Sequence record: AP018399.1
DNA: 64,000 nt
Strand: one strand, 5' to 3'
The notes under the pieces are model-generated. The model was not told the DNA's origin. It did no database searches and saw nothing but the letters and a program-made list of their open reading frames with translations. Of this stretch, positions 8,110 through 64,000 are shown piece after piece; the stretch's first letter is position 1; each line of letters begins with the position of its first letter. Made by a program: the position numbers and the translations under genes.

Positions 8110-8114
8110 TCTAA

Positions 8115-8474
8115 ATGAAATTCAAGCTATATCAAAACAAGTCATCGGTCAAGAAAAAGAACTCCCGCTACCTACAGGGTGGCGAAACCGACGTGTTCAA
8201 GGAACGTCTCGGTTGGTGGGAGAAGCGCACCGACATTCCTAATGAAGAAATCAGCGATACCGTCTTCGTTCTAACGAAGCGTTATGAACACCGTCCATAT
8301 CTGGTCGCCAAGATTTTCCTTGACAGAGAGGATTTGGAATGGTTGATTTTGCAATACAATGAAATTGTTGATATAATGGAAGAGTTTGTTGCTGGACGTG
8401 AAATCCGCATTCCAAGTAAGAATCGCGTGAATTTCAGTATCATCACCAAGCCAACCACAAGTAACAAGCTATGA
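8115..8474 (+). CDS. Baseplate wedge protein, LysM-like (gp53-like)
   Basis: YEHRPYLVA...LEWLILQYNEIVD...G.EIRIP. Confidence 0.75.
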   Translation: MKFKLYQNKSSVKKKNSRYLQGGETDVFKERLGWWEKRTDIPNEEISDTVFVLTKRYEHRPYLVAKIFLDREDLEWLILQYNEIVDIMEEFVAGREIRIPSKNRVNFSIITKPTTSNKL

Positions 8475-26300: not shown

Positions 26301-27311
26301 GACTTGTCACGCCAGACCATCCTAGCGGTCCTAACCGACCCTAACCGTGAGTTTGAATACGTAAACATCGAAGAGTTCCTAGCACGCCATGACTTCCTAA
26401 CACCGGAAGATATCATCGCTGCCATGAATGAAATCTACTTGAACTTCTCAGTGTCAGAAGTCAACACGATTTTCTTCGCGGTCCTACACGATGCTATGAG
26501 CTTGAAGATGGAACATTCTGAAATCTTTAAGACTTCGTGGGTTGCTCTACAGATTTCGCAGAATGTCGTACCGTCGATTCCGATGCCATATGACGAGCTA
26601 CGTCTAGTTCCGGGTCCAGACTGTGCGGCTCCACCGCCGTCACCGTCTCCGACACCAACACCGACAACTACGCCGCAGCTAAGCCCAACACCTACTCCGA
26701 CACCGGACACCTGTGGCAACGGTCCAGATGACCGTATCCTTGAAGATGGTGAGGGACGTATCACGGAAGACGGTCAGTGCCGTATCGTTGAACCGTATGT
26801 GCCAGAGCCTACTCCGACACCTACACCAACACCTACACCGATTCCTCAGTGTGGCGATGGCGACGATGACCGTGTAACAGAAGACGGTGAAGGTCGCATC
26901 ACCGAAGATGGTGAGTGTCGCATTGTGGAACCAGTGGTTAATAATCGCCAGATTGTAGGTACGATGTATGTCTATGACATGGGAGAAGGTGGTCAAAATC
27001 TATGGATAGCAACCACCGAAGGCTATTGTGGTCCAGAGGTTATTACATCACTGGAAGCCGTGGGGGACTATGTAACCGTTGACCCTATCAATGACACATG
27101 GGATTGTCCAGTTACCGACCAAGAGTTCAATGACCCGGTTACATACTCAATCATTCTAGGACCAGAAGTTCCGGAAGGAAATGGTAATTGGGTGGCAAAT
27201 ACGGGCGCATTGAGCGGTTACAGCCCATCGTCTCGTCAATATGTAATGGAATTGATTGTGAATGGAACTGACACAATTTATGTGTGGATGGTAATTTCCG
27301 AGGGTGTATGA
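17370..27311 (+). CDS. Giant baseplate wedge/structural protein (gp7-like position), 3313 aa, C-terminal Pro/Thr tracts
   Basis: Uninterrupted ORF after gp6; GTG start with AGGA RBS and TAAATA at 17335-17340. Confidence 0.7.
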   Translation: MADNNSDYKKTNFNLNDFLPETNKGEFLDSLNKNLFNRYLTKDEFDHIVGIIGDADPNDKVTKPIKERTAFRQDNQLQPVVTEKIGSVNHFMGFEDFMTRIGRTGVDTEKFDQWGNALQFNWVPPIDLDKIVNYRDYYWNSTANPDHAIPQYIVIKSQKNWTAARYVQALKTIVDITGVVPVESFDIPTQKLMLPGNVASSYVAGNHLVLSQADGSLQLVTIASATYNFASTKTEIATVESFTLSSAANLSVYISPVELPVVSISGENLTLNGNFTNLLIEGYVVGVNTNPARLYTVKTSTFDTVTNVTTVTLDGLTVVGFNTLSLYPALALIQAEAEFTADNDTSYPTGGWDNNNIGKIFWYRNTEILNGTQGSTSLGSNILQDLTKNYLVFGIQNTDELQINVGNKNAGKYTINSVTPTTIQTNSGQFFSASTISYRVIRPFSFESISDSTPPLSPSLNQMWYNTATDTLSQWNGSTWNLVYIGISNLAKLVNDRIVTNFSNENDWSDDNEWVHTSQITEFTGMIRAQMPIIEYFPYLDMSETSYSEKVWRYRKDDALSYVDSAVGPKMIELMNFTYSGSEFTFPDVNTMQFDQKFGNFVGELEVGDEVVLSGFTQNDGIYTIATKEYYQPGPGQRYVSRITFTTPIISTTDLPMGANFGPYLTSNGDLFAGLDAKQWEFGGVQDIRASSLAPTKNPMLDVNVATGTSNGFEWILGLNSQTYSSQGNIVVEPTFFFDTSLHDLVLYDDYQEGDIRVYINGKRVYGAFEDLASWVDPDYVGGIKFINGYTVYASDIVRIELGEYAIEDIGLRAILVNTPIGNELYNLTNVRKIEQRKSESNQYPYFALRDIYGERLNLATSIFKYAESESSAINANVLKRIVTNGDGTDYTFVQELKDPATGRLYCYYDYQEVGDELQTIWKHGTYSEQYVPTKVDGAWEMPNQWYYNISHDNYTEVKLTEIFRHFKSIIDLQEQPGLFSKTAGLFFLDDQINYGVGGTIKEHNDGFDTLVSSIFVNNGNPTTIINFAKNEYDNQVRYVKERYYQEAADLFSNTALNVSDLQAAITESLINSVENNGKFDQWFGDTTSYDAATALGVRNWIATLPQFGLQPRSVPFSVQDSSLGMYEVHCHDGHVTNVAFNPAMTEQLVRRITANNPSISQVVASEAVPFPTDYEGNPLSTGIYLIRTNTTARTRKLYRFGGAAVWELVDVNAIFANTILEIENRLYAVAPEVFDARYDFTDVEADPAFEDLMEVQFLEYTRLEGISTPLNNSDRFRQNNPFTWNYYYSPIQNDPLTGLVSYNTAGTWQALYENVFGTAYPHLEPWVLQGYDNKPSWWDAQYADTTGSRRWTLTMWSNVFDGIIPVGQTAPNGNPGTGTVGQITNRFSYLPVNTGSVETDDGYGLDAILPPYWNTVNTTDARIRGLYDPNAGELVTTPQLNFEFGQNGLVEWEWRQSLSYLYDRMVVAYKIDPMRFMHETFGIDYQIVSCLQISKESEKVFSHKDTIFHGDFIDATNNIYKAYGLNQWYVHYQRYSGFDGISSEFRSLWKDWDTDLAYLVGAFLDTPSFSIESDFFDITTKDYEIAVKKTKGIADEWLTSLTATVLNVPSPYAKLRDQGIGWTVEISDNCPVARPIQYHPTQNYSVNVNTSGQPFRIFSYPLKGIELVPARGFQTVTYNSPVAMSSSTGLNPATTYTFEVEFNQTTLANATVLGSDAQTFGDLFNVLADQIGTAGSFGIENGNVVVYSASNAPTSSVVITDNTVFAATSGFVQLETPASTPNKFDGAFRIEGNFYSTFVDAGQITITYSTLFNGTYTIDRVYYDATTYQTLIFVKENVTLPSTGSVLVDGLLEPLNAKTLPPEWTTGTEVYFNTTGYLPNNFDDEVPYYVIRLSDREFRVAETKDAALKGVYVTPTSNALGEVFIGKILMTFQALGGQLTTYNWRHHAVDYRYVDSSSSNLMISGIQQVVDFLTGYDAYTQTNGFRYRNINGENYDATTGLNNNWQTVTEKFINWLYALRNFQQETMLSYKVTGNASNDSLVMLNGTVPNWQNGTPVILLDDANSTLPAEFNNPLSSIIPYYVIRVQGSLTEFKLAATAYDAARGNAIPMTDSGVGAFRVQVYKAVSQYPTYELNPFKHYIWVHHEQGVLSNVLDDDYTDPTSAARLYDNNGIELTTANVLVFREDKESRISLTEDTIAQNRLAEEQNKPTMHMSGMHLFFDGYEHMIRFNDYSVDNSLIYDSFLGLNTPRFYVEFDRQQDFTLRPNVGGFYMLGESLVQNFESTVNDMRYYYDSVKAPEGRVTTDLVRKSLGYDGPKDYMSDLKINPKTQFQFWQAMIQNKGTNRAVRAFTNQSIFDSAVVDEFWAYKLAEFGDNKERNYIEMKLFPSDVVKNDLRIEFIAPENAAIDSTFTGVELTDMNRWWDQPDQIEAMRPYEAFFFNTKVSSIIDNIASVVQRIDNRIIYVFNDFVDSVVMTYFDPTTQTTKVLNEGVEYRFLNSKVIEFLIEPGVLPPITASTLSYDYDAQNPAKLIDKDAGIVLATVPFWHPAIGQYYNVPYYAVDLRRPTDPAIYTTSLDGGNTGSATWKKNHVGTVWMDSSIEQYLPYFDKTVYPAINDRINKWGKLADWADINLYQWTESTVPPESYDELARRQSFDMSIPDEDKATGETYKLLYQNVNYDSPDDVDAPPFWIQIQDTHYDFIAGLSSQGMDTTLAGKKAEIFINGKFLEAITFEDAQAVHAYFAQFNFGDYCHAIVRAHVPTADEIQAGAYAYYTPHSIEKRFDVKSGTTYNVYYYWVKDKKQPVSPLATSVSLYSAKKQLVDMSDPYMILQGVRTPDFGYGLIFGHVFDEFAYNLPYRYTQMIAKGLHGTVKDNNRTVMRFTRDFTLRDKLDKDSITPKNKHEEWKLFREQQLEKVDRYLWNKVTEALIGFKLNLDATAATDEAIPSLNRILFDRIYQADTQYGMGDEQVFTNKDLSRQTILAVLTDPNREFEYVNIEEFLARHDFLTPEDIIAAMNEIYLNFSVSEVNTIFFAVLHDAMSLKMEHSEIFKTSWVALQISQNVVPSIPMPYDELRLVPGPDCAAPPPSPSPTPTPTTTPQLSPTPTPTPDTCGNGPDDRILEDGEGRITEDGQCRIVEPYVPEPTPTPTPTPTPIPQCGDGDDDRVTEDGEGRITEDGECRIVEPVVNNRQIVGTMYVYDMGEGGQNLWIATTEGYCGPEVITSLEAVGDYVTVDPINDTWDCPVTDQEFNDPVTYSIILGPEVPEGNGNWVANTGALSGYSPSSRQYVMELIVNGTDTIYVWMVISEGV
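26712..26933 (+). repeat. Two 28-aa Cys-flanked acidic repeats separated by a PT linker
   Basis: CGNGPDDRILEDGEGRITEDGQCRIVEP (26712-26795) and CGDGDDDRVTEDGEGRITEDGECRIVEP (26850-26933). Confidence 0.9.
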
Positions 27312-27829
27312 TTGATGTGCATGTCCTAACCATGAGGAATCATCCGCCGTATGGGCGGCGGGAGAATCTTCCTTATATTCTGGACGCACTTTCCAGAGAG
27401 CCAGTCAACGTTCATCTAGTGGACGTTGACCAAATTGGTAATGAAACTGCCATGAGAATAAAGGCTCTACAGAAGGGTACCTCAGAATGGGTCGGGTGGG
27501 TTGACCCGGATGATGAAATCATTCCGGGTGCTTACCAGATGCTACTTGACCACAAAGGTAATACGTCATTCGCATGGTCAAATGAACTTGTCAATTCATT
27601 TGACCGAAATGGAAAATTGGTAAGTACGACAGTTTACCGCGAGCCGCATCACATGATGATTATTCATCGTGATGTTCTTGACCTAGATTATCTCGCAAAA
27701 CGAGAATTCGCAACAGTCATTGGACTCCATCCTCTTATGAAGATTGGAACCCATGTAAATGAAATTGGATATGTCTGGAATCGTCATCCTGATTCCGACT
27801 GTGAAGTAGCCAAACGCCTATATAAATAA
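27308..27829 (+). CDS. Small GT-A (GT2-like) glycosyltransferase
   Basis: Beta-strand start IDVHVLT, RIKALQKGTSEWVGWVDPDDEI (DxDD motif); ATG 27308 overlaps the TGA of the giant protein. Confidence 0.65.
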   Translation: MIDVHVLTMRNHPPYGRRENLPYILDALSREPVNVHLVDVDQIGNETAMRIKALQKGTSEWVGWVDPDDEIIPGAYQMLLDHKGNTSFAWSNELVNSFDRNGKLVSTTVYREPHHMMIIHRDVLDLDYLAKREFATVIGLHPLMKIGTHVNEIGYVWNRHPDSDCEVAKRLYK

Positions 27830-27849
27830 CATCAAGGAACCCTAAAACC

Positions 27850-28563
27850 ATGTCCCAACGTATCAGTGACCTAACCCCCGTTTCAAGTATTGCCGGTGAC
27901 GAGCTAGTTGAAGTTGCCGTTCCCAATAGTGAATCTCCGACCGGATATGTAAGCCGCTCGGCAAGTACCTCCCTATTCGGTGGCGGTGGTGGACTACCAT
28001 ATCGCTTTACTTTCGAAATCAACGACGAGCCTATCGGCAGTGACCTATCATTCCAATTGTATTTGGAAAAGGGACAGTTTGATAGTACAGCATTCCGCCC
28101 AAATGCAGATTCGGACCCTGATGGTGACTGGACCCTAGCTACTGCTATCATGAATTTCAATGCTATTGCTGGCTTCCATTTCTCTTCGGAAGATAACTTC
28201 CAGTTTTACGCATTTTCACCGCTTAATTCATCGGTATGGGTAAACAAGATGGGCGGCGCTCTAGGAAGTGGTGCTGACTCGGATGCTGACCAGTTGCGTT
28301 GGGGTACATTCAATAACAGCAATGACCTATCAATTTACCAGATTCCCGATAACTACCCATCAAGCAACTACATGAATAACACTCCGGTAATTGCTCCGGT
28401 TGAAGTTTATGAAGATGGTAACTTCGGTCCGGACGGTTCTATTGTGATTCGCTTCCGCGTTGTATCTCCGTATAATGGATGGGGTACATACCCACAGACA
28501 TTCAGCCTCAAAGGATACGCCGATATTAACATGGCATTCAGCAACTTCTATCGTCCGGCATGA
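27850..28563 (+). CDS. Putative tail fibre/appendage protein
   Basis: N-terminal RISDLTPVSSIAGDELVEV fibre-type motif; exact TATAAATA at 27821-27828. Confidence 0.5.
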   Translation: MSQRISDLTPVSSIAGDELVEVAVPNSESPTGYVSRSASTSLFGGGGGLPYRFTFEINDEPIGSDLSFQLYLEKGQFDSTAFRPNADSDPDGDWTLATAIMNFNAIAGFHFSSEDNFQFYAFSPLNSSVWVNKMGGALGSGADSDADQLRWGTFNNSNDLSIYQIPDNYPSSNYMNNTPVIAPVEVYEDGNFGPDGSIVIRFRVVSPYNGWGTYPQTFSLKGYADINMAFSNFYRPA

Positions 28564-29228
28564 TTTTAAATTTTGAAGGACAGCACTCAGGGGACGTGAT
28601 TATGGCATTGCCGGTAATCACGTCCCTTCGGCTTTCCGGGGTAGACGTTAAAATTTATGTAGCCGAAGACTACAGGTATCTTCTAACAGGGCTTGGTCTG
28701 GAATATGTAAGTGAACCTATTGGCCCTAGGCTATCAACCCAAAACATTACCGGCCACGCTACTGAATTCTGGTTGGATTACTTCCGAGTAGAGCCGGTGA
28801 AGATGGACGTTCCGACTCTTCCTGCTACACCAACGGTGGTACTATCTCCGGATGCTCGTACACACGTTCGTAGATTTCCAAATGAATTCTGGGAAGCGAT
28901 TGTATGGTGGTGTAGTGACCGGAACCTGCCAGTGACGGTGATTGGTCCCAAGGATGCTGTCAAACGTAACGCATTCCTAAGCGGCCCAAACGTCACCAAC
29001 CTCACGGGTGAGCAGACGATTGAAGAAACCTACGCGACGCTGAAACATGCTCTGGCGGTCGTTACGACGGACACCGGAACATCACATCTATCCGATGCTT
29101 TGAACGATGTAACGGTCACAGCATTCCGTGTAAATAATGATGAAAAGTTTGCGCCATATTGGAATCGGAGAGTCGTGAAAGACTTATCCGGTGCGATAAA
29201 GCACCTTGAAACATTGATAAATAAGTGA
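28560..29228 (+). CDS. GT9 (heptosyltransferase-like) glycosyltransferase
   Basis: SGDVIMALP..., NLTGEQTIEETYATLKHALAVVTTDTGTSHLSDAL (D.G..H.A motif); ATGA overlap with upstream gene. Confidence 0.8.
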   Translation: MILNFEGQHSGDVIMALPVITSLRLSGVDVKIYVAEDYRYLLTGLGLEYVSEPIGPRLSTQNITGHATEFWLDYFRVEPVKMDVPTLPATPTVVLSPDARTHVRRFPNEFWEAIVWWCSDRNLPVTVIGPKDAVKRNAFLSGPNVTNLTGEQTIEETYATLKHALAVVTTDTGTSHLSDALNDVTVTAFRVNNDEKFAPYWNRRVVKDLSGAIKHLETLINK

Positions 29229-30480: not shown

Positions 30481-30547
30481 AGAAAATGTCCGCGAAAGCG
30501 GACATTTTCTTTTGTGCTAAACAAAATGTCCGCTTTCGCGGACATTT
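30481..30547. terminator. Bidirectional terminator formed by two inverted copies of one GAAA hairpin
   Basis: AGAAAATGTCCGC-GAAA-GCGGACATTTTCT then AAATGTCCGC-TTTC-GCGGACATTT, between convergent operons. Confidence 0.85.
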
Positions 30548-30550
30548 ATG

Positions 30551-32191
30551 TTAGTTCTTGTAGTGTTCATTCTCTCGTCGGGTCTTCCCGTCGTAATGGT
30601 ACACGCGATTGTGGTTGATGACCGTCGCTAGCAGGCTACCGACCTTCAACTTCCCTTCACGCATGTGCATCATGGTCTGGCTCATCCAAGTCTGTTCATA
30701 AAGGTGAGCGTACTGGACTTCCTTGAAGACGACCTGTGTACCCTTCTTCGTGAACATGATAGGCCAGTTGCAGTAGTGGTATTCACCTACTGCGTATGGC
30801 AGACCCTTATGGCTGTTGGTGTAGAACACCTTGGTCGCCCAATTCTCACCACCCTTCTCCGGTTCCGGGAAGTATTCCTGACGCTTGTGTTCGGGAAGAT
30901 TCTTGTAGGCCCAATTGTGGTGGTTGTCACCATAGAACTCGGTGAAGGCAAGCTTCAAGTAATCTAGCTGCTCATTCTTCATGATATCCATGCACTTGTC
31001 GAACACGTCATCGTGGAAGGTTGTGAAACCCATCTTACACGGAGCCGCACCACGCTGCTGCATTAGCATGTCGTCTTCGAAGAACACCATGTAATTGTGC
31101 TTGGATTCTAGGAAGTGTTCTGCTGCGAACTGACGACCGCCATTGATGCCGATGTTGTCCTTCTTGAACTCTTCGAAACCATACTTCTCAAACAATGCCT
31201 TGTACTTCTTGTCTACACGCTTGTCGGTGGAGTTGTTGATAACGTACTTACGAACCTGTTTGAACACGTCTGGGAACGCCGAAATGAATGACTCAGCCCA
31301 TAGTTCAAACTGCTGTGGTAGATTATAAGTTAGCACGTATACGGCTAGTTCCTCTTCCACGTCCGGCAAGGGTCGGTCTTTTAGGTCTTGTAGGTAACGG
31401 TAAACTAGACCGTTGCTCTCAATCATACGTACATTCACCTTTTCTGGATGCTTGTATGCGATGATAGTGAAGATGGATTCCTCGGTACCCATCAATCCCT
31501 GATTCAACGAGTCGTTCAACAAACCGTAGTAGATATCGTTGATATCGTTGATTATGTGCTTCGGACCACCGAAGATACCACCACGGCACACGTACTGCGT
31601 ATCAGCACCGGCCATACGGTTCATGGCATTCTTTTCAAAGCCGTGAACTTCTAGGGTACCGTCATACGGGAACGCGACGTAGAGCATCTTGTTCATGTCC
31701 TGCGTAACGCGACGTTCGAAGTCAGCGTCCAAGTAAGCAGTAGGGTCGCCAATGGTATTTGCAATACCGGCGTCAATCCATAGGTAATACTTGGTGTCGA
31801 AGAAGTTGAAGTGGGTAGCGTCGTTCAAGAAGAACTGCTTGGACATTACAAGTGGGTTGTATAGCTCAAGCTTGGCCTGAGTGGAGTCCGGTAGCCAACC
31901 TGCGTAATTGAACCACTTCTCATCGGTACGAATCTTTTGTACTTGGTCGTAGAACGGGAACGCACGAAGGTCATCCAGCGTCTTGAAAATCAGACGGGTG
32001 TTCTCCTGCTTACGATACTTCCAGATGGTTTCTGCGAGCTTTTCTTCACAGTAGATTACCATCGGATAATCCACCTTCAATAGCTTGCTGAACGACTCAA
32101 CGTAGTGGTCGAACGAACGCTTGAAGCCGGAATCCAAGTCTCCGCGACCAAGGTCAAATAGGGCTGTAACTAGGGTAAGATTGCCGGCCAT
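30551..32191 (-). CDS. HtrL/YibB-family glycosyltransferase-like domain fused to a GT-A (GT2-like) domain
   Basis: LTLVTALFDLGR, YLWIDAG, GGIFGG, GTEESI; second domain AVYVLTYN...YVINNSTD...NIGINGGRQ...MVFFEDDML. Confidence 0.75.
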   Translation of the reverse strand: MAGNLTLVTALFDLGRGDLDSGFKRSFDHYVESFSKLLKVDYPMVIYCEEKLAETIWKYRKQENTRLIFKTLDDLRAFPFYDQVQKIRTDEKWFNYAGWLPDSTQAKLELYNPLVMSKQFFLNDATHFNFFDTKYYLWIDAGIANTIGDPTAYLDADFERRVTQDMNKMLYVAFPYDGTLEVHGFEKNAMNRMAGADTQYVCRGGIFGGPKHIINDINDIYYGLLNDSLNQGLMGTEESIFTIIAYKHPEKVNVRMIESNGLVYRYLQDLKDRPLPDVEEELAVYVLTYNLPQQFELWAESFISAFPDVFKQVRKYVINNSTDKRVDKKYKALFEKYGFEEFKKDNIGINGGRQFAAEHFLESKHNYMVFFEDDMLMQQRGAAPCKMGFTTFHDDVFDKCMDIMKNEQLDYLKLAFTEFYGDNHHNWAYKNLPEHKRQEYFPEPEKGGENWATKVFYTNSHKGLPYAVGEYHYCNWPIMFTKKGTQVVFKEVQYAHLYEQTWMSQTMMHMREGKLKVGSLLATVINHNRVYHYDGKTRRENEHYKN

Positions 32192-32194
32192 TGC

Positions 32195-32935
32195 TTAAAT
32201 AATCCTCATAATTTTGTCGTGATGTAGATACCTAAATGTATGTAGAACTGGATTTGTTCGCATGAAATTCAGGATGGGTGTATTGGGTAGATTCGACTCA
32301 CTCATGGCGTAAGAAATCTCCAAAGCTTCAATGAACGGGTTGATTCCTCGGTCATGGCAGCGCTTGGTAATCTCAACCCATGTGTCCATGAATGTCTTGA
32401 ATTCCGGACAATTTGGCTTGAAGAACATGAACACTTCGATGGGCATCTTGGCCTTAATCTTATTCATGTCGATACTCAACGCCTGAGCCTTCGGGTCCAG
32501 TAGGAACGCGATACCACCTTCCTCGCATGGACGATTGCGGAAGCGAGCGATTAGACCCTGTTCCGGCTGTGCGATGAAGTTCTGGAAGTCTTCTTCGTCC
32601 CAGCCAATCAGGAAGCCGTCAGCATCCGAATGGATAATCATGTCGTAACCGCCACGTTCGTATGCTACCTTCGTAGGTAGAATCTTCAAATTGAAGTTGA
32701 ACATGCGTTCAGCAAACCAAATGTTTTGGTCAGACACCGACTTGAATTCCACGATATGGATTCGGTTGGCGTCAAGTTCCGGATGCTCATTCACGTAGGT
32801 CGTCAATTCCTTAACATCATCGGTGATGACAATCACATCACCCTTGGTTAGAAGGTTGACGCAATCAATCAGAGTGCGGACTTTGTAATTGTGTTCCACG
32901 CCAAGGGCGAGGCTTGCGAATGCATACTTATGCAC
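32195..32935 (-). CDS. GT-A-like glycosyltransferase (DxD)
   Basis: VIVITDD, FNFNLK, IIHSDADGFL; co-transcribed with the GT cluster. Confidence 0.55.
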   Translation of the reverse strand: MHKYAFASLALGVEHNYKVRTLIDCVNLLTKGDVIVITDDVKELTTYVNEHPELDANRIHIVEFKSVSDQNIWFAERMFNFNLKILPTKVAYERGGYDMIIHSDADGFLIGWDEEDFQNFIAQPEQGLIARFRNRPCEEGGIAFLLDPKAQALSIDMNKIKAKMPIEVFMFFKPNCPEFKTFMDTWVEITKRCHDRGINPFIEALEISYAMSESNLPNTPILNFMRTNPVLHTFRYLHHDKIMRII

Positions 32936-33788
32936 GAATCACCTTAAAGAAATCTGAGAACGCTACGTGAACGTTCGGGTCGTACAGGTCAATCGGCCAG
33001 TCGTCATGGTACCAGCTATTGAACTTGAAATTTGTGTAAAGCTCTGGCTCACGCTGGTGAAGGTAGTACATGATTTCCTCTTCCTTGAGAAGAACGTCAT
33101 GGTCAATCACAAGCTGCATGTGCGTCGTTGCCTTGCCGATGTAATCCAACAGTACGTCACGCTTGCCGCCGAAGATACCGCCGATTACGGCGTATTCTGG
33201 ACGGTCTGGGTAGACTTGTACGTAATCGTCAGAGCCGTGGTTCACGGTCTGTGACAGGATATTCAGCACCTTGTCGCCAGCGTGCTTGTTCAGGTCTTCA
33301 AATAGATTACGCTTCTGGTTGATGAGGTCGAAATCGTAGAACGACTTACTCTCTGGACTACGGAACTTATTGGTAATCAGGCCACCGTGGAAGATACCGG
33401 CATCAATCCAGTACAGGCTATCGCCAGCTTCTAGCTCCGTGGTATTCTTCCAGAGCCAGTAGAACTTACCCCACATGATTTCCACACAGCGGGAACGCCA
33501 TGCATCTTCGGTAGTGTACTTCGCCTTACGGTCCTTGATGGCTTCAATCTGCTGATGGAAGTAGTTCTCGGATAGTTCCTCGACAACCAACTTGACATTC
33601 GGATGATTCTCAAACCAATTGGTCAAGTCTTCCAGATGCGCAGAAGCAGTATAGCAGACGATGGAGTAGCCACCGTCTGCCAGAGAGCGAAGCGAAAGTT
33701 TGTAGCGGTCATAGATGGCCGCTGTGTTACCGTTATATCGTGTGCCCTCTAGTCCAGTATAGATTGCAGTTACGAATTGGGGCTTCAC
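32928..33788 (-). CDS. HtrL/YibB-family glycosyltransferase-like protein
   Basis: FVTAIY, MWGKFYWL, LYWIDAGI, GGIFGG, EEEIM; paralogue of 30551..32191. Confidence 0.7.
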   Translation of the reverse strand: MKPQFVTAIYTGLEGTRYNGNTAAIYDRYKLSLRSLADGGYSIVCYTASAHLEDLTNWFENHPNVKLVVEELSENYFHQQIEAIKDRKAKYTTEDAWRSRCVEIMWGKFYWLWKNTTELEAGDSLYWIDAGIFHGGLITNKFRSPESKSFYDFDLINQKRNLFEDLNKHAGDKVLNILSQTVNHGSDDYVQVYPDRPEYAVIGGIFGGKRDVLLDYIGKATTHMQLVIDHDVLLKEEEIMYYLHQREPELYTNFKFNSWYHDDWPIDLYDPNVHVAFSDFFKVIRA

Positions 33789-33790
33789 GG

Positions 33791-36088
33791 TTATTCCTCT
33801 ATCAATTTAACCTTGTCTACTGCGCCTAGAATGGCTGGGGCTAGGTATTCATGGTCTAGGTTACTGACCTTGCCTAGCTGGCAGTACCATAGGTACATTG
33901 CCTCCCACTGATTGCTTAGCCATTCTACATTTTCAAAATTGCCACCGAAGAACTTCACTGATGGGTGTAGTTCGCCCATACCACGACCGAACTTGTCACT
34001 CAACCACTTCTCATCGAATGTCGTGTTGACGATATCACGCTTAGCCGATAGGATTAGGTGTGAATTGTTCTGCGACATTGTAATTAGATTGTTCAAGTCC
34101 TTCTGGAAGGTCGCCGGGTCGAACTGAGCTAGGTCAACGAAGACGTGGTGTGAAGCCATGTAGCGGTCTTCGTTCAACGCTTCCTTCGTCCATAGCAGAC
34201 GAATCTTGTCATAGGCACCAACGACCGTCTTCTCTCCGTGGTAGTTCTTGAGGTACACATGACGCGGTTCCACAGTGTAGACATGGAAGCCAGTCAGGTC
34301 ATGCTTAGCCTTGGTGGACTCTTCGGTGATGATGACTACATTGTCCTTACCACGTAGAGCCGCTAGGTTCTTGGCAATCGTTTCGTGCTGGTCCGGAGAC
34401 TGTTCGAACACGAACGCATTGACGCCCATTCCTGCGCGAGCCTTCTTCGAAGTGAATACCGGCGAACGCTTGAACTTACGGGCATCCTTCTTCTTGAAGA
34501 TGAGGTTACCCTTGTAGTAGATAGCGTCCATTTCCGAGTTGTCTAGGATGGAGAATGCATCCGATAGACGGGTCAGAATTGGCTTACCATTCACGTTGAA
34601 CGAAGTGTTCAAGATGACAGCATGACCGGCGTGCTTTTCGAACTCGGTGATTAGGTCATAGATTAGTTCGTTCTGTAGACGGGTCACCGTCTGTAGACGA
34701 GCCGTACCGTCCGTGTGGGTGATGGCCGGGAGCGTTGCCTTGTACTCTTCACGCACGTTGGCGACGAACGTCATATGACGCGACTCAACGTTGTAGTCGT
34801 AGTGGAAATACTTGTTGGCATCCTCTAGACGCACGATAGGAGCGAACGGACGGTACCATTCACGATGCTTGACCTTGTGGTTCAGCACATCCTTCATGTC
34901 GCCTGACGGGTTACAGATGATTGAGCGATTGCCTAGCGCACGCGAACCATGTTCCGAATTACCTTGGATTAGACCGACGATGTTGTTGTCAGCCACGAAC
35001 TCAGCAAGCTCCTGAACCGTCACGTTCTCGTAAACGAAATACTTTGACTGGTCCTGAATGTAGGTTGAGAATTCCTTGTCGTCCAGAATCGGTAGACCGG
35101 AGTAGGTCAGGTCAACCGGGTACTTCGGAGCGATGTGCCATAGCAGGCCACCAGCGGAGATACCACAGTCGCTAGTGTTCGGCGGAACGAAGACGTTACC
35201 ACCCTTGATTTCAAGCAGACGAGCGTTCAGAAGAACGTTCAGACCACAACCACCAGACACGACTAGCGGAATGTGACTGTACTGTTCTAGGAACGGCCCT
35301 GCCAATTCAAGGAAGACTTCCTCAAAGGCTTTCTGGGTCGTAGCAGCGATATCCCAAGCGACCTGACCGCTAAAGCGCGTCTTTTCAAAGTCAAATCCTT
35401 CGAATAGACCGATAGCGGTTAGTAGGTCGGTGACAGCCTTGGTTCGCAGTTCTAGACCACCGATGTAGGAGTCTCCACTGTATACGAATTGCTTGTAGTA
35501 GTGTTTGAAGGCATCCATCCACTCTTCGCGGACGGTACCATACGAGCATAGACCCATCAGCTTACCGGCATACACAAGGTTGCCGATGCTCAAGGAATCT
35601 CGCTTGATATCCTCAAGGTAGTCGGCAAGCAGCATGTATGGGAAGCCAAGGTCATTAGGTAGACGATGGATGAGCTTGATACCTGTGTTTCGGTCAGCTT
35701 CGTAGAAATTGAAGTAGCTACCATCACCGCCACCGTCGAACGAAATGGCTAGAGCCTTGTCGAACGGTGACTGGTAGAAAGCAGCCGCAGCATGTGCAAC
35801 ATGGTGGTCTGCGGCTAGTTGCTTCTTGTACTTGAACTTCGGAACAATCTTGCTCACGTAACCGGTGATGTAAACGTCAACTTCTGTCTTACCAGCCTTG
35901 GCTAGAAGCCAATCGGTAATCTCATCGAACACCACCTGTGGATGTGAACACGGCATGTAATTCACCAAGCCGATGTTCTTTGAGTTCAACCAACGTTCTA
36001 CTTCAACTACAGTGTATTCGCCCTTGTAATACATTGAGATTGCGGCGTTATGGGAACCATACGCCGAAATCACCAGATAATCGTTCAT
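33791..36088 (-). CDS. NodU/CmcH/TobZ-family O-carbamoyltransferase with C-terminal degenerate HtrL-like domain
   Basis: HHVAHAAAAFYQSPF, FDGGGD, GKLMGL, GGCGLN, D.GIS.G, EHGSRALGNRSI, REWYRPFAP, H.DGTARLQTV, LNTSFN..GKPI. Confidence 0.92.
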   Translation of the reverse strand: MNDYLVISAYGSHNAAISMYYKGEYTVVEVERWLNSKNIGLVNYMPCSHPQVVFDEITDWLLAKAGKTEVDVYITGYVSKIVPKFKYKKQLAADHHVAHAAAAFYQSPFDKALAISFDGGGDGSYFNFYEADRNTGIKLIHRLPNDLGFPYMLLADYLEDIKRDSLSIGNLVYAGKLMGLCSYGTVREEWMDAFKHYYKQFVYSGDSYIGGLELRTKAVTDLLTAIGLFEGFDFEKTRFSGQVAWDIAATTQKAFEEVFLELAGPFLEQYSHIPLVVSGGCGLNVLLNARLLEIKGGNVFVPPNTSDCGISAGGLLWHIAPKYPVDLTYSGLPILDDKEFSTYIQDQSKYFVYENVTVQELAEFVADNNIVGLIQGNSEHGSRALGNRSIICNPSGDMKDVLNHKVKHREWYRPFAPIVRLEDANKYFHYDYNVESRHMTFVANVREEYKATLPAITHTDGTARLQTVTRLQNELIYDLITEFEKHAGHAVILNTSFNVNGKPILTRLSDAFSILDNSEMDAIYYKGNLIFKKKDARKFKRSPVFTSKKARAGMGVNAFVFEQSPDQHETIAKNLAALRGKDNVVIITEESTKAKHDLTGFHVYTVEPRHVYLKNYHGEKTVVGAYDKIRLLWTKEALNEDRYMASHHVFVDLAQFDPATFQKDLNNLITMSQNNSHLILSAKRDIVNTTFDEKWLSDKFGRGMGELHPSVKFFGGNFENVEWLSNQWEAMYLWYCQLGKVSNLDHEYLAPAILGAVDKVKLIEE

Positions 36089-36134
36089 TGTGTACCTTTG
36101 AATTGTTTTGACTTAGTATTTACCATTCTGCCAA

Positions 36135-37508
36135 TTAGACTGTAACTGGCTTGGCGATACGATTGCCCCAACCCTTCGACGCACTGTGCGGCCATACGAT
36201 GTACTGCGTAGCAGCCTGATTGCCACGCCAAATTAGGCGGAAGTCAATCCATTCGTTCTGGACGTAAGCCTTGATTTCGTGCGGCTGTGCGTCCTTACGG
36301 AAGATTTCCTTACCCTCTGCGTCAGCCGAACCGACGTACCAGAATGTCATGTCATCCGGTAGCGTTCCGTCTGGGAAGGTTAGTTCGTTGCGGTGGATTA
36401 GAACGCGGATATCATGCGAACCCACGAAGGTTCCCTTCCACTGTTCCTCATTCTCATACACGAAGTCGCCCGGTGGTTCTAGACGGTCGATGGTCTTCTG
36501 CTGAACACCACGGTACTTGAAGCTGATACCGGCGTACTGTTCGTACTCAAGCACGGTGCGTGCAGTACCGAAACCGTACTTGCCGAAATCAATCTGTGAC
36601 GGGTCTTCACCATCCATTCCAAATAGAATGCGGTTACGCTTGTGGCATAGGTCATTACGCTGGACCCAATCTAGCTCCACACGGCCCTTATTCTTCTGTG
36701 CAGTGGTGTGGTCGTCCCAAACCTTGGTACGGCCCTTACGGGTGTACTCGTGCCATGCGATTAGGCGGTGCGGGTGATACAGGTCATAGCCGTGAGTGTA
36801 TGCACGGACAGCGATGGAGATTTCTTCACCGTGGAAGAAGTATTCCGGGTCGTGCTGAACTTCTTCTGCGAAGATGCCATCGGCAAATGCGAAGTGAGCA
36901 GAGAAGAAGCGAGCGCGCATCGGTTCAGTGAGTTCCTTCCAGTTGTCGATAGTTGACGGAATGAAGAACACAGCACCTTCCGGAATGAAGCGGTCAAAGT
37001 CCATCTTCCACGGGTCTTGTACGCGAGCGCCGGGGTCATTCTCTGGGTCGAACGACGGAATGTAAGCGGTTAGAAGCGGCTTCGGTGACTTGGTACGAAG
37101 ACCTTCTAGCATTTCGATAGCGACCTCATCCCAGCCTTCAACGAAGCGGTGGTGAGAGTCAAGCTGCATGGTATACTTTTCCTTGGAGTATAGCTGCTGA
37201 ATCTGGTTACGTGCCCAGCAAGCGCCCTTGGTCTTATGGAAGTGAATGTCGATGACAGACAGCTTGGTGCCTTCTGGGCTTACGACGTTCAGGACAGTCG
37301 CACCACCAACACGCTGGTCTTCGGAAAAGCCTTCAACAACGAAGCCAGCATCTAGGAAAATGTCGGTCGGTTCGTCTTCACCATGCTGCCAGCAGATACC
37401 TACGTGTAGGTTCTCTGGATGCTTGGCGTTCTCAATCATGTTGCGTAGGGTAGGAATCAACTGCGGGTCGCGGTACGCGGCCATCTGAACGTAAATGGTA
37501 TTGGTCAT
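36135..37508 (-). CDS. GT60-like polypeptide/hydroxyproline alpha-GlcNAc transferase (Skp1 GlcNAcT/Gnt1 family)
   Basis: TIYVQMAAYRDPQL, GICWQ, KGACWAR, QLDSHHRF (DxH), KPLLTAY, FSAHFAF, FF.GEEISIAVRAYTHGYDLY.P. Confidence 0.85.
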   Translation of the reverse strand: MTNTIYVQMAAYRDPQLIPTLRNMIENAKHPENLHVGICWQHGEDEPTDIFLDAGFVVEGFSEDQRVGGATVLNVVSPEGTKLSVIDIHFHKTKGACWARNQIQQLYSKEKYTMQLDSHHRFVEGWDEVAIEMLEGLRTKSPKPLLTAYIPSFDPENDPGARVQDPWKMDFDRFIPEGAVFFIPSTIDNWKELTEPMRARFFSAHFAFADGIFAEEVQHDPEYFFHGEEISIAVRAYTHGYDLYHPHRLIAWHEYTRKGRTKVWDDHTTAQKNKGRVELDWVQRNDLCHKRNRILFGMDGEDPSQIDFGKYGFGTARTVLEYEQYAGISFKYRGVQQKTIDRLEPPGDFVYENEEQWKGTFVGSHDIRVLIHRNELTFPDGTLPDDMTFWYVGSADAEGKEIFRKDAQPHEIKAYVQNEWIDFRLIWRGNQAATQYIVWPHSASKGWGNRIAKPVTV

Positions 37509-37570
37509 GAATAGGTTCCTGTAAAAGTTACTCTTTTACTTATTACAAGTGTTTTAACAAGTAATCCATA

Positions 37571-37620
37571 TTAGAGGATACGATTCCATGTTAGTGGATA
37601 CGATTCAATCTTAGAGGATA
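37571..37620 (+). repeat. 2.5 tandem copies of a 20-bp unit in a divergent promoter region
   Basis: TTAGAGGATACGATTCCATG / TTAGTGGATACGATTCAATC / TTAGAGGATA. Confidence 0.85.
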
Positions 37621-37630
37621 AATATCCTTC

Positions 37631-38068
37631 ATGAATGTAAAAGAATTCCTCCAAACACCCAATTGGGCTATTCGCCTAAGCAAACTATCCTACGCATCAC
37701 GTAAGATGATTGAGAACAACATCGTCTTCCAGACACCCTTCCTGCCACAGACGGCTACCATTCCACAACGAGCATGGCACATCGTCCATGAAGTGAACAC
37801 GGTTCCAGTCTGTAGCATCTGTGGACAGTTCTTGAAGTTTCAGAAGACGAACAAGTATTCGTCCTACTGTTCGGTTAAGTGTTCCAGAAAATCACCTGAC
37901 GTGCATAAGAAGAAACTCAAGACAGAAATCGCCAAGTGTGGTAGTGTGGAGAAGTTCAGGGAAAAGAAAGCCGCTACATTCAGGCAAATTTCCCAAGAGC
38001 TTTACGGAGTGGACAATATCTCACAGGCCGAAAGCATCAAAGAGCAGATAAAGAAAAAGCGAGGATAA
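37631..38068 (+). CDS. Zn-finger protein resembling the N-terminal part of phage homing-endonuclease-like proteins
   Basis: CSIC...YCSVKC; YGVDNISQ.E.IKE.IK; no nuclease domain follows. Confidence 0.55.
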   Translation: MNVKEFLQTPNWAIRLSKLSYASRKMIENNIVFQTPFLPQTATIPQRAWHIVHEVNTVPVCSICGQFLKFQKTNKYSSYCSVKCSRKSPDVHKKKLKTEIAKCGSVEKFREKKAATFRQISQELYGVDNISQAESIKEQIKKKRG

Positions 38069-49606: not shown

Positions 49607-51571
49607 TTAAATTATTGGTGTTGGAGTCGGAGTGATTGTAGCTGAAACCGTAGGTGTTACAGTCAATCCCGGTGTGGTGCTTGGGCTAGGAGTTGGAGTC
49701 GGTGATACCAATCCAGCCGTTGATGTTGGAGTTGGTGTCGGAGACAGAGTTGGTGTTGGAGTTACCGTAGGAGTCGGAGTCGCTGATGCTACCGGTGGAC
49801 CCTCTTCCGGGAACGGTCCGGCTACTGGCGTGTAGCTGCCAGTGTAGCGGCAAACGCCCTGAGTGTAACGAATGTTGGTGAAGTAACCACGGAACGATTG
49901 CAAATCGCTTCGACCCACAATACCAAACACCGCAAATGGAGTAGAGTCACTGGTCGTCTCAATGCTATCAATATTGGTTCCTATTAAAACGCCATCCTTA
50001 AATGCATAGATGGTACCGTCAGCATCACGACAGAATGCCACTGATACCCATGTGTTCATACCAAATGTAGAATCTAGGTTTGGAGTACCCCACAGGTTTG
50101 TATAGATTCCTGTAGTGTCGAACTTACCCATATGACGAACTCCGTCATTGGATAGCATATAGCCACCGGTATCTGTAGCCTTATACCAGAACTCCATTGT
50201 ATAGACTTGCTCTAGAGCAAAGTCAATACTAGACGCGAAGGAATAGAATGTACCAAATTGAGTTGAGTTATGATACGAAGTATAACTGCCACCAAATGGG
50301 CTATCAGCCACTAGAGATACGCCAGTGGTATTGTCTGGGAGACGTTCGTAGCTACTCGTATCGGCTAGGGTCTGTCCATTCAGCAACAAAACTACATTGT
50401 CAAAATATGGGTCATAGTTGATGACCGGAGTAACTGTAGGCGTCAACGTCGGAGACACGGTAGCTGTTACCGCTGGGGTAGCTGATGGAGTTACCGTTGC
50501 CGTAGGTGTTGGGGTAGGCTGAATCGGCGAAGCTGTTGGGCTTCTAGTAATTGTAGGGGTTACCGTTGCAGTAGGCGTTGGAGTAGCCGAAACCACGGCC
50601 GGGGTAACCGTTGGGCTTGGAGTCAAAGTAATAGCAGCCGTAGCACTCGGGGTAATTGTTGGAGTGATGGTCGCTGATGGAGTTGGAGTAATTGTGATGC
50701 CCGGTGTACCAGTCACCGTCTGTGTCGGAGTCACGGTTACCACTGGTGTTCCGGAAATCGTCGGCGTCACACTTGCAGTCGGAGTGATTGTACGTGTAAC
50801 AGTCGGCGTGACCGTCGCAGTTGGTGTTGCGGTAGTCGTCGGAGTAATGGTTGGGGTCGCCGTTACCGATGGGGTAAACGACGGAGTAGGTGTCGGAGTC
50901 GGCTGAATTGGCGACGGAGACGGGGTTATAGATGGAGTCGGTGTTGGGGTAGGAGACGGCTTGAGAATATCAACGTCAGTGACACCCGGAACATACTGGC
51001 TTGAACGTGCAGCAGCTACAGAAAGCTTCTTACCGTACACAAGCATCTGTGACTCAACGTTTTCCTTCTGAAAGACGCCCGAACGAACCTGATAACCAAT
51101 CTGGAAACATGCATTGCGGAAAGCTGCTACCAAACTAGGAGCTACCGTAACTGCATTGGCTTCAACATCCGTCAAGCCAAGGTTCTCAACCACGATATCA
51201 ATTAGCTCTTCGCGGTTGGCATTCTTGACGGCATTAGGGTTGGACGAGTAGATGACGTTGTTGAACAGATATAGATTCTGAGCAGGAACGCCCTTACACA
51301 GACGTGAGAGTAGTTCCAGACCACGAAGACCTTTCGACACACGTCCATTACCGCTGTCTAGGAAGATATTCGAATTCTGGTACAATGCTGTCTGTTCGGC
51401 CTTGGGCTTCTCTGGTACGTAGCCGTTGTCCGACTGGCTAATGGCAACAGGGAACTTAAGCGAATCAATGTACTTGACCACTGCACTGACTGACTGGTTT
51501 ACAAAACGCTGGTCAATCTCTTCAAAAGTTGTCAGGTTTCGGATAAGTTCGGAATCTTTTTTGTTTGCCAT
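49607..51571 (-). CDS. Virion protein: N-terminal domain, Thr/Pro tract, LamG/concanavalin-like domain, Thr/Pro tail
   Basis: ~180-aa TPT-rich tract; DPYFDNVVLLLNG...YTMEFWYK...WVSVAFCR...FRGYFTNIRYT; ATG 51571 after TAAATA 51589-51594. Confidence 0.75.
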   Translation of the reverse strand: MANKKDSELIRNLTTFEEIDQRFVNQSVSAVVKYIDSLKFPVAISQSDNGYVPEKPKAEQTALYQNSNIFLDSGNGRVSKGLRGLELLSRLCKGVPAQNLYLFNNVIYSSNPNAVKNANREELIDIVVENLGLTDVEANAVTVAPSLVAAFRNACFQIGYQVRSGVFQKENVESQMLVYGKKLSVAAARSSQYVPGVTDVDILKPSPTPTPTPSITPSPSPIQPTPTPTPSFTPSVTATPTITPTTTATPTATVTPTVTRTITPTASVTPTISGTPVVTVTPTQTVTGTPGITITPTPSATITPTITPSATAAITLTPSPTVTPAVVSATPTPTATVTPTITRSPTASPIQPTPTPTATVTPSATPAVTATVSPTLTPTVTPVINYDPYFDNVVLLLNGQTLADTSSYERLPDNTTGVSLVADSPFGGSYTSYHNSTQFGTFYSFASSIDFALEQVYTMEFWYKATDTGGYMLSNDGVRHMGKFDTTGIYTNLWGTPNLDSTFGMNTWVSVAFCRDADGTIYAFKDGVLIGTNIDSIETTSDSTPFAVFGIVGRSDLQSFRGYFTNIRYTQGVCRYTGSYTPVAGPFPEEGPPVASATPTPTVTPTPTLSPTPTPTSTAGLVSPTPTPSPSTTPGLTVTPTVSATITPTPTPII

Positions 51572-63341: not shown

Positions 63342-64000
63342 TTAGGCACATTCGTTGTCAATACCACCACAACGGCAACCGTTGAAGATTGGAGTACAGT
63401 TCATTGGGCATCCGCAGTTGTCTTCAACTGTGCCACCACAGCCCTGATTTGGTCCGCACTGTGTTCCACCGCCACCCGAAGGCGTCTGTGTAGGTGTGGC
63501 CGAAGGTGCCGGAGTGTTGGATGGAGCCGGAGTGTTGGATGGAGCCGGAGTATTCGAAGGTGCTGGCGTCTGTGTACGTGTTGGTGTCACTGGCGGCGTT
63601 GGTGATGGAGTCACAGCGGCCGTTCGTGTCGGTGTAGCAGTTACCGGTGGGGTCGGTGATGGAGTACGGGTACGTGTCACCGATGGAGTCACCGAAATTG
63701 TTGGAGTAACGCTTGGGGTCACTGTCGCGGTACGGGTCACTGTTGGAGTTACCGTGGCCGTTACAGATGGTGTTGGTGTGTATGTTCTTGTTGGAGTACG
63801 TGTAACCGTTGGAGTCGGCGAAGCCGTCGCTGTTGGGGTAAGCGTTACTGTTGGTGAAACTGTAGCCGTCACGGTAGGAGTAATCGTCTGAGTTACAGCC
63901 GGAGTTGCGGTTGGGCTAGCAGTGGTCGTCACGGTAGGAGTAATCGTAGCCGTGACCGATGGTGTAACCGTTGGAGTTACACCAGAAGTTGGAGTCACAG
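63342..64000 (-). CDS. Partial Thr/Pro-rich (mucin-like) protein ending in an 8-Cys mini-domain
   Basis: At least 170 aa of TPTVT repeats, (TPAPSN)x3, GGGG linker, CGPNQGC...CGC..NC...GCRC...EC; open to the window edge. Confidence 0.8.
   Translation of the reverse strand, partial: VTPTSGVTPTVTPSVTATITPTVTTTASPTATPAVTQTITPTVTATVSPTVTLTPTATASPTPTVTRTPTRTYTPTPSVTATVTPTVTRTATVTPSVTPTISVTPSVTRTRTPSPTPPVTATPTRTAAVTPSPTPPVTPTRTQTPAPSNTPAPSNTPAPSNTPAPSATPTQTPSGGGGTQCGPNQGCGGTVEDNCGCPMNCTPIFNGCRCGGIDNECA

Follow-up and report, generated by a model that had tools for sequence, protein, structure and literature searches.

ORF334 of the Xanthomonas jumbo phage XacN1 is a GT60-family glycosyltransferase and a probable initiator of O-glycosylation on Thr/Pro-repeat phage proteins

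XacN1 is a jumbo myophage of Xanthomonas citri, the citrus-canker bacterium, and we analysed a 64,000-nucleotide stretch of its 384,670 bp genome (AP018399.1; the whole stretch is called the window here, and window position + 186000 gives the record position). Its open reading frame (ORF) ORF334, a minus-strand gene with an ATG start encoding 457 amino acids (aa) (BBA65482.1, deposited as 'glycosyltransferase family protein'; feature positions are collected in Table 1), almost certainly specifies a genuine enzyme of family GT60. We put at about 0.6 the probability that this enzyme is a cytoplasmic initiating transferase that O-links N-acetylhexosamine (HexNAc) to Thr/Pro-repeat structural proteins of the phage. 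The reading draws on the family, predicted fold, catalytic residues and solubility of the protein, its pairing with an HtrL-like transferase gene and its association with Thr/Pro-repeat genes; from these we infer a donor sugar, an acceptor residue, an order of steps and a biological role.

The Pfam profile PF11397, 'Glycosyltransferase (GlcNAc)', matched residues 4-330 of ORF334 and was itself covered from position 1 to position 350 of its 352 (E 3.2e-77; 260.8 bits, the cut-off being 21), and the PHROG family phrog_24687 ('glycosyltransferase') covers the protein end to end (E 3e-233). A preliminary description of this DNA had placed the gene in a phage and, from the motif set AAYRD, G.CWAR, DSH and GEE, in GT60; both assignments are borne out by the nearly complete profile match and by the identity of the record. 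All four motifs are present (AAYRD at residues 10-14, GACWAR at 95-100, DSH at 117-119 and GEE at 227-229). In an alignment of 49 full-length homologues, with identities down to 31%, Q41, G95, R100, D117, H119, F122, D127, F208, E228, E229, R235, G240, P246 and H253 were invariant, and A10, Y12, R13, D14, C97, W98, A99, S118 and G227 were at least 90% conserved. The motifs thus fall on invariant or nearly invariant columns and form a conserved core rather than chance strings.

An AlphaFold2 model built from the same alignment had a predicted local distance difference test score (pLDDT) of 95.7 and a predicted template-modelling score (pTM) of 0.90. Among the Swiss-Prot models of the AlphaFold database (AFDB) its top structural match was Gnt1 of Dictyostelium (Q8T1C6; E 2.2e-21, TM-scores 0.60/0.64), a GT60 enzyme that aligned with residues 1-361 at 21% identity, followed by polypeptide GalNAc-transferases at about 1e-9. 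Searches of the PDB gave only the latter at the top: the first 17 Foldseek matches were all GT27 polypeptide GalNAc-transferases, as were the first 29 VIA-align entries (Z 18.6-21.8), which superposed about 275 residues with a root-mean-square deviation of about 3.5 Å and 12-16% identity, their catalytic domains aligning with model residues 1-338. LARGE1, with Z 16.3, was the first different fold in the VIA-align ranking. The best match was therefore not an unrelated GT2 enzyme, the alternative that the preliminary description had considered, but Gnt1 and then the sister family GT27. Sequence searches of the PDB with ORF334 alone and with the 49-sequence profile found no solved relative, so it is the predicted fold that connects ORF334 to solved structures. 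GT60 and GT27 are sister families and the only two in which DxH replaces DxD, and GT27 enzymes use a C-terminal His as a further metal ligand (PMC7185993); both families O-glycosylate polypeptides on Ser/Thr (PMC7185993; PMC8724618). D117 and H119 together with the invariant H253 fit this pattern of DxH and C-terminal His, which predicts that they bind a metal.

Beyond the Pfam match ORF334 carries a C-terminal region (residues ~338-457) whose sandwich core occupies residues ~362-457 of the model, about 95 aa, in good agreement with the extra ~90-aa beta domain seen in the preliminary description. Modelled alone, this domain formed a beta-sandwich of seven strands, accompanied by one or two short helices (pLDDT 93.4). 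Foldseek found nothing in the PDB at E<=1e-3, VIA-align gave Z scores up to 6.9 to FN3 and GH2-glycosidase sandwich domains, a range that the tool itself calls common, and the best match among AFDB clusters was an unnamed 'Glycosyl transferase' (E 9e-5). The fold is a generic sandwich whose matches do not speak to substrate selection, the role that the preliminary description proposed as a possibility. The domain is a retained part of the protein: the best 120 database matches and all 80 retained viral loci align to about residue 452, and W447 is at least 90% conserved in the 49 homologues. It is missing from other phage GT60-like proteins, whose length is about 310-350 aa. We considered it as an analogue of the ricin-type lectin domain of GT27, the absence of which separates GT60 from GT27 (PMC8724618), and rejected this, given its seven-strand FN3/Ig-like sandwich and the lack of any beta-trefoil match.

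Viral loci encoding relatives of ORF334 are rich in genes for Thr/Pro-repeat proteins. Defining a mucin-like region as at least 40 aa with S+T+P at least 65%, S+T at least 30% and P at least 15%, we found one or more called ORFs with such a region in 57 of 82 GT60-bearing viral loci. The median distance from the GT60 gene to the nearest of them was 210 bp, and in 29 of the 82 loci the directly upstream gene on the same strand was mucin-like (e.g. loci L037, L022, L057, L072 and L086). A six-frame scan was positive for Thr/Pro repeats in 61 of 80 GT60 loci (1.46 Mb) against 1 of 120 random viral stretches (0.99 Mb, picked by an arbitrary 15-base pattern; Fisher p 4e-33). In the reverse direction, a GT60 homologue was present in 9 of 120 stretches selected solely by a (TP)6-coding pattern and in 0 of 120 controls (p 0.003). 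The loci are related, so that the p-values overstate their independence, and the effect is still large.

A composition scan of the window for long Thr/Pro(/Ser/Val) repeats identified several candidate acceptors in XacN1 itself. In ORF350 an N-terminal domain precedes about 200 aa of Thr/Pro repeats, which lead into a ConA/LamG-like domain resembling a cyanophage protein and then a Thr/Pro-repeat tail. ORF369 contains about 235 aa of Thr/Pro repeats, and its homologue in the isolate phage Xoo-sp13 about 130 aa. The protein at the same position in Stenotrophomonas phage RAS14 has a Thr/Pro block of about 40 aa behind a different N-terminal region, so that its homology to ORF369 is not established. 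No Thr/Pro block occurs at the syntenic position in the GT60-negative Ralstonia phage RsoM2USA. ORF370 has two repeat blocks and a C-terminus that matches a PHROG 'virion structural protein' family. ORF325 (17370-27311, 3313 aa) adjoins baseplate wedge genes and has, near its C-terminus, a Pro/Thr/Ser-rich stretch that is conserved in the Xoo-sp13 homologue (L002 18502-19329), with a shorter second stretch about 45 residues downstream. The likeness to trypanosome mucin initiation drawn in the preliminary description is thus apt, in that the phage and its relatives encode Thr/Pro-repeat proteins. The authors who described XacN1 listed ORF328 and ORF334 as its two glycosyltransferases, found purified virions to contain at least two periodate-Schiff-positive protein bands and, with chlorovirus PBCV-1 as the analogy, suggested that the phage glycosylates itself (PMC5852040).

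ORF350 is a mosaic, its N-terminal ~210 aa being common to proteins of only ~191-196 aa in Xoo-sp13 and in Stenotrophomonas phages CM1 and RAS14. As its mucin and ConA-like extension is specific to XacN1, we rejected ORF350 as a universal acceptor.

If this association reflects enzyme and substrate, ORF334 would be a soluble, cytoplasmic, metal-dependent GT-A enzyme that starts mucin-type O-glycosylation of the phage's own proteins. It would add the first HexNAc, likely alpha-GlcNAc from UDP-GlcNAc, to Thr/Ser of the repeats in the host cytoplasm before virions are assembled; its acceptors would be fibre-, baseplate- or head-associated proteins with long Thr/Pro-repeat segments. ORF330, the conserved partner, and ORF332 and ORF331 would then lengthen the glycan and ORF333 would O-carbamoylate one of its sugars. 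The glycosylated proteins would enter the virion as fibres or decorations and give it a lineage-specific glycan coat, which might for example stabilise the particle, protect it from proteases, or help it to adhere to the host surface or be shielded from it. For the Skp1-type hydroxyproline route raised in the preliminary description we found no support: Pfam and family profiles found no prolyl 4-hydroxylase (2-oxoglutarate-dependent, 2OG-Fe(II)) partner in ORF330-ORF343 or ORF326-329, a range that includes the cluster.

The gene content around GT60 fits an initiator with changing downstream enzymes. In 79 of 87 related loci a gene like ORF330, encoding a two-domain HtrL-like protein of about 550 aa, accompanies GT60, always on the same strand and 0-6 kb away. 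Genes like ORF332 (27 loci), the carbamoyltransferase (11) and ORF331 (6 by direct BLAST; 16 viral loci by family clustering) are found less often, and the genes between GT60 and the ORF330-like gene vary, with a CmcI-like O-methyltransferase in 31 loci and a GT25 enzyme in 24. A constant initiator and a constant partner with changing tailoring genes are what would be expected for a lineage-specific glycan.

Such cassettes have been interpreted otherwise. Iyer et al. read jumbo-phage glycosyltransferase/carbamoyltransferase clusters as surface-polysaccharide or secondary-metabolite systems (PMC7824862), and the former assumption recurs in the jumbo cyanophage literature (PMC12801897). The cassette would in that case remodel a host surface glycan (lipopolysaccharide (LPS) core, O-antigen, xanthan or capsule), for instance to block superinfection or alter adsorption, and relatives of its HtrL/YibB and GT9 proteins do belong to LPS-core gene sets. 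We consider this unlikely, since Pfam searches found no flippase, polymerase, ligase or initiating phosphoglycosyltransferase in the cluster, its five proteins have no transmembrane segment or signal-like N-terminus (maximum 19-residue hydropathy <=1.33), the closest structural relatives of ORF334 act on polypeptides and not on lipid-linked glycans, and the tight linkage to Thr/Pro-repeat genes would be left unexplained.

The secondary-metabolite reading of the same paper (PMC7824862) would have the cluster produce a carbamoylated small-molecule glycoside or free oligosaccharide, Nod-factor-like or aminoglycoside-like. Carbamoyltransferases of the NodU/CmcH type are indeed best known from Nod factor and antibiotic tailoring, but here the carbamoyltransferase is an occasional member of the loci while the GT60-HtrL pair is nearly universal; genes for an aglycone or scaffold are missing, and the GT60/GT27 fold points to peptide acceptors, which makes this product very unlikely. 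Phage glycosyltransferases are classically DNA-modifying, and the cluster adjoins RNase H and DNA polymerase genes, so glycosylation of hypermodified bases against restriction was weighed as well. We hold it to be exceedingly unlikely: BssHII, NaeI and SpeI cut XacN1 DNA, which was sequenced by conventional means (PMC5852040), the GT-A fold is of the GT60/GT27 type with no DNA-glucosyltransferase among the Foldseek and VIA-align matches listed for ORF334, and no base-hydroxymethylase was seen in the neighbourhood.

The family to which ORF334 belongs is large and mainly viral or bacterial. A word-indexed search gave 6389 matches, the best 120 of which are full-length at 56-98% identity and mostly from metagenomes, several on contigs of 290-390 kb; an exhaustive search gave 4194 clusters (50% identity) at E<=1e-3. 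At least 563 viral contigs in IMG/VR encode relatives, and ESM Atlas clusters with PF11397 are 80-97% viral (Uroviricota) or bacterial. Among isolate phages the gene was found only in XacN1, Xoo-sp13, CM1 and RAS14. GT60-like folds also occur in Megaviridae and Pandoravirus, and GT60 has already been recorded in prokaryotes as well as protists (PMC7185993). The label 'protist-type' given in the preliminary description does not hold, as a very large phage and bacterial clade shares the full architecture at 35-98% identity, Gnt1 reaching only 21%.

Full-length cellular homologues are encoded in the chromosomes of Yersinia enterocolitica (35% identity) and Burkholderia sp. JSH-S8 (48%) and in metagenome-assembled genomes (MAGs) of Alphaproteobacteria and Solirubrobacterales. 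The closest of them lie within type VI secretion system (T6SS) clusters in the fixed order TssF-TssG-TssA-fimbrial-domain protein-GT60, and we found no description of a T6SS-associated GT60 in the literature. In Burkholderia a VgrG of 827 aa (L090 13081-15561, minus strand; domains Phage_GPD, Gp5_trimer_C and Phage_base_V) contains an extended (PT)n run; its gene adjoins a PAAR gene, and the GT60 homologue is 3.7 kb away. The VgrG is possibly a glycosylated spike. A (TP)n ORF directly follows the GT60 homologue in the Solirubrobacterales MAG. The fimbrial-domain neighbours were rejected as obvious acceptors, not being Thr/Pro-rich. A 216-aa gene that follows GT60 on a jumbo-phage contig and a 215-aa gene that follows it in Yersinia showed no similarity to each other.

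In the alphaproteobacterial MAG (L006) the homologue (7902-9236) abuts a 1244-aa protein (9272-13003) in which an eCIS_core domain was recognised (PF13699, E 3e-21). The domain takes its name from extracellular contractile injection systems, whose cargo proteins it marks, and the pair represents another contractile-injection context. These neighbourhoods, and the soluble, cytoplasmic nature of the enzyme by hydropathy scan, raise the alternative that ORF334 glycosylates a host protein, and its bacterial homologues a target-cell protein, as takeover or effector enzymes akin to glycosylating toxins. This too we regard as distinctly unlikely. The phage gene is tied to three or four further transferase domains and to methyl- or carbamoyltransferases, a setting that points to a complex glycan more than to one regulatory sugar. 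Neither a secretion signal nor a packaging signal was identified, and the (PT)n neighbour in the T6SS is the VgrG spike itself, so that modification of a structural protein fits equally well.

Other domain combinations were observed in the wider family. A bacterial fusion of 2461 aa (P0122; L091 8001-15386) combines repeated GT60 domains with GT2, AhpC-TSA and a prolyl-hydroxylase-like 2OG-Fe(II) oxygenase, and the Atlas contains GT60-2OG-Fe(II) fusions from Chlorophyta and phage fusions of GT60 with GT7 and with O-FucT. Hydroxylation-coupled glycosylation may therefore exist in some GT60 branches.

Tentatively, the phage and bacterial loci can be brought together. Enzymes with GT60 and sandwich domains could represent a prokaryotic mucin-type O-glycosylation of Thr/Pro linkers in the fibres, spikes and decorations of contractile injection machines, namely myophage virions and T6SS VgrG, that is widespread in uncultivated phages and possibly ancestral to the eukaryotic GT60/GT27 mucin initiators. 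We judge this wider proposal possible but doubtful.

Several observations weigh against ORF334 as the initiator for Thr/Pro-repeat proteins. The donor and acceptor proposed for it are extrapolated from distant relatives (21% identity to Gnt1). The Thr/Pro-repeat genes of XacN1 lie 9.5-26 kb from ORF334 and are not adjacent to it, and the mucin part of ORF350 is lacking in Xoo-sp13 and RAS14, both of which have the transferase. No Thr/Pro-repeat ORF was found near the Yersinia and metagenomic T6SS GT60 genes. The XacN1 paper names neither the glycosyltransferase family nor the Schiff-positive bands nor an acceptor (PMC5852040), and the identity of the bands is unpublished. On the statistical side, the random control stretches have only about half the length of the GT60 loci, and these loci are not independent: the 82 GT60 proteins fall into 64 clusters at 90% identity, 19 at 70% and 5 at 60% by single linkage, with a mucin-like ORF in 43/64, 11/19 and 3/5 of these, and directly upstream of GT60 in 6/19 of the 70% clusters. 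In loci centred on the DNA polymerase gene, mucin-like ORFs were present in 22 of 30 with GT60 and in 29 of 50 without it, and Thr/Pro linkers may just be a general trait of these phages. We dropped these loci as a matched negative control, as they come from the same phage group and GT60 may fall just outside the locus, and the random-pattern viral sample was used in their place.

Within XacN1, ORF334 stands first in a block of five tightly packed minus-strand ORFs running from 37508 to 30551 with gaps of 46, 2, -8 and 3 nt, which accords with the preliminary description of it as the head of a minus-strand glycosyltransferase cluster. ORF333 matches phrog_1601 ('Nol-like carbamoyltransferase') and a NodU model (4e-52); its residues ~535-765 form a C-terminal extension of about 230 aa with no family match that is missing from the homologues of 525-542 aa in other phage loci. 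ORF332 itself has no Pfam match, but 4 of 23 members of its family reach PF09612 (best 1.6e-9), and the family has a conserved 'WIDAG' segment. ORF331 has no Pfam or PDB relative even by family profile. An alignment of its family, comprising XacN1 and 14 of the 16 viral loci with such a gene (15 members), contains an invariant D-x-D and an F-N-x-x-L-K motif; we call it a putative transferase solely from the DxD, and the family may be an unclassified one of glycosyltransferases. ORF330 matches PF09612 (E 2.5e-21) and TIGR02192, and its ESM Atlas cluster, 99% viral, comprises 3145 members whose C-terminal half is GT2-like. Fusions of the HtrL domain to a methyltransferase are present in phage relatives.

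Promoter and terminator scans of the region gave no more sites than shuffled sequence. The hairpin past the last stop codon of the block is a consensus match only, such sites being no more frequent in the region than in shuffles. In the divergent intergenic region upstream of ORF334 the element TATCC(T/A)CTAA has three local copies; its 12-nt form has two matches, one exact and one with 1 mismatch, both in this region and none elsewhere in the window. Among the plus-strand neighbours ORF326-ORF328 there are matches to PF00535 (E 1e-3), PF01075 (E 1.8e-15) and NCBIfam heptosyltransferase I (1e-11); these genes are not conserved across the 87 related loci and are possibly part of the same glycosylation island.

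In other loci, a 365-aa protein with Fe/Mn superoxide dismutase domains and an N-terminal extension of about 165 aa is encoded near the GT60 cassette in 22 viral loci (e.g. L052 19201-20298, minus strand). Near-identical and 90-99% identical copies of the XacN1 cluster (32000-37700) were found in metagenomes from soil, groundwater and wastewater, and RNA-seq libraries from wastewater contain them too. XacN1-like phages are thus environmentally widespread; as wastewater RNA libraries can contain DNA, the contig matches are no proof of transcription.

Table 1 Features of the XacN1 window and of T6SS-linked GT60 loci. Window positions count from the first letter of the 64,000-nucleotide stretch; for other loci they are positions in the locus.
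Feature	Sequence	Position	Strand	Description
ORF334	window	36135..37508	-	GT60 (PF11397) GT-A glycosyltransferase; predicted initiating polypeptide O-HexNAc transferase
Catalytic GT-A domain of ORF334	window	36498..37508	-	residues 1 to ~337; DxH D117/H119, GEE 227-229, putative metal-binding H253
C-terminal domain of ORF334	window	36138..36497	-	residues 338-457; FN3/Ig-like beta-sandwich
ORF350	window	49607..51571	-	mucin-like candidate acceptor; 118 Thr in 677 codons translated
ORF369, 3' part	window	63342..64000	-	594 aa, extends past window; adjoins tail sheath stabiliser; candidate acceptor
ORF325 Pro/Thr/Ser-rich stretch	window	26586..26741	+	first, longer of two near C-terminus; candidate acceptor
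ORF333	window	33791..36088	-	NodU/CmcH-type O-carbamoyltransferase, 765 aa; PF02543 + PF16861
ORF332	window	32928..33788	-	divergent HtrL_YibB-like glycosyltransferase, 286 aa
ORF331	window	32195..32935	-	246 aa; invariant DxD (D104, D106); putative GT-A transferase
ORF330	window	30551..32191	-	two-domain transferase, 546 aa; N-terminal HtrL_YibB + C-terminal GT2-like half
Hairpin	window	30524..30547	.	palindrome between convergent ORF329 and ORF330, just past last stop of block; possible terminator
Divergent intergenic region ORF334/ORF335	window	37509..37630	.	122 nt, upstream of ORF334
ORF326-ORF328	window	27308..29228	+	neighbours: ORF326 weak GT2 match, ORF327, ORF328 GT9 heptosyltransferase-like
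T6SS-linked GT60	L089 (Yersinia enterocolitica)	8001-9338		
T6SS-linked GT60	L090 (Burkholderia sp. JSH-S8)	8001-9407		
T6SS-linked GT60	L005 (metagenome)	10001-12394		GT60 domain tandemly duplicated, 797 aa

What is new here is a GT60 enzyme with a sandwich domain in a phage cassette linked to mucin-like proteins; in the full-text literature we found no description of this phage system of GT60, HtrL-like and Thr/Pro-repeat genes. To our knowledge, mycobacteriophages are the only phages whose own enzymes have been demonstrated to glycosylate the virion, and mucin-type O-glycosylation, in which GT27 or GT60 enzymes start glycans on Thr/Pro-rich repeats, is held to be a eukaryotic feature. Should the proposed role be right, many uncultivated phages, together with some secretion systems of bacteria, would share the logic of a DxH GT-A initiator with Thr/Pro-repeat acceptors, the virion glycoprotein bands of XacN1 would be explained, and a very common unannotated phage gene pair, GT60-like and HtrL-like, would gain a function. 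It would also bear on phage stability, receptor interaction and immunogenicity, with relevance to Xanthomonas biocontrol, and would raise the question of where eukaryotic mucin-type glycosylation originated.

Characterised GT60 enzymes include Dictyostelium Gnt1, which forms alpha-GlcNAc on Skp1 hydroxyproline, and two polypeptide alpha-GlcNAc-transferases, Dictyostelium Gnt2 and Trypanosoma cruzi TcOGNT-2. ORF334 shares with this family full-length PF11397, the GT-A fold, the DxH and the C-terminal His, and it resembles Gnt1 in lacking both a signal peptide and a membrane anchor. It differs from Gnt1 in its extra FN3/Ig-like C-terminal domain, outside the Gnt1-aligned stretch (1-361), and in its setting: a bacterial virus, with HtrL-like transferases as partners and no prolyl hydroxylase in the cluster. 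The acceptors predicted for ORF334 are Thr/Pro-rich in a way similar to the mucins that trypanosome GT60 enzymes modify; the T. cruzi GT60 enzyme accepts the Thr-rich peptide KPPTTTTTTTTKPP (PMC3769586), and T. cruzi gp72 has a heavily glycosylated PTVTPTP... domain (PMC3630849).

GT27 enzymes, the initiators of animal and Toxoplasma mucin-type O-glycosylation, offer the closest solved structures and have the DxH and C-terminal His in common with ORF334, as well as a layout in which an accessory domain is attached C-terminally to the catalytic one and the association with Thr/Pro-rich acceptors. The resemblance is confined to the catalytic fold, ORF334 having no Pfam GT2 (PF00535) or ricin match, and GT27 enzymes are type II membrane-anchored proteins of the Golgi whereas the phage enzyme is predicted to be cytoplasmic.

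Among viruses the nearest precedent is the mycobacteriophage system, in which Freeman et al. are said to have described, in 2023 (Cell Host Microbe; cited in PMC12801897), virion O-glycosylation by phage-encoded cassettes. There, as proposed here, transferases and methyltransferases decorate the phage's own virion proteins; the host is actinobacterial rather than a Xanthomonas. The transferases reportedly belong to other families, and the acceptors are reportedly the C-terminal tails of capsid and tail-tube subunits, not long Thr/Pro repeats. We found no report in the literature of GT60 in mycobacteriophage glycosylation systems. PBCV-1 (A064R-type) and giant viruses likewise use cytoplasmic, virus-encoded, multi-domain transferases, some of them fused to methyltransferases, to place atypical glycans on structural proteins. 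These are eukaryotic viruses with different enzyme families, and the glycans of PBCV-1 are N-linked to Asn, whereas those proposed for XacN1 would be O-linked to Thr/Ser of the repeats.

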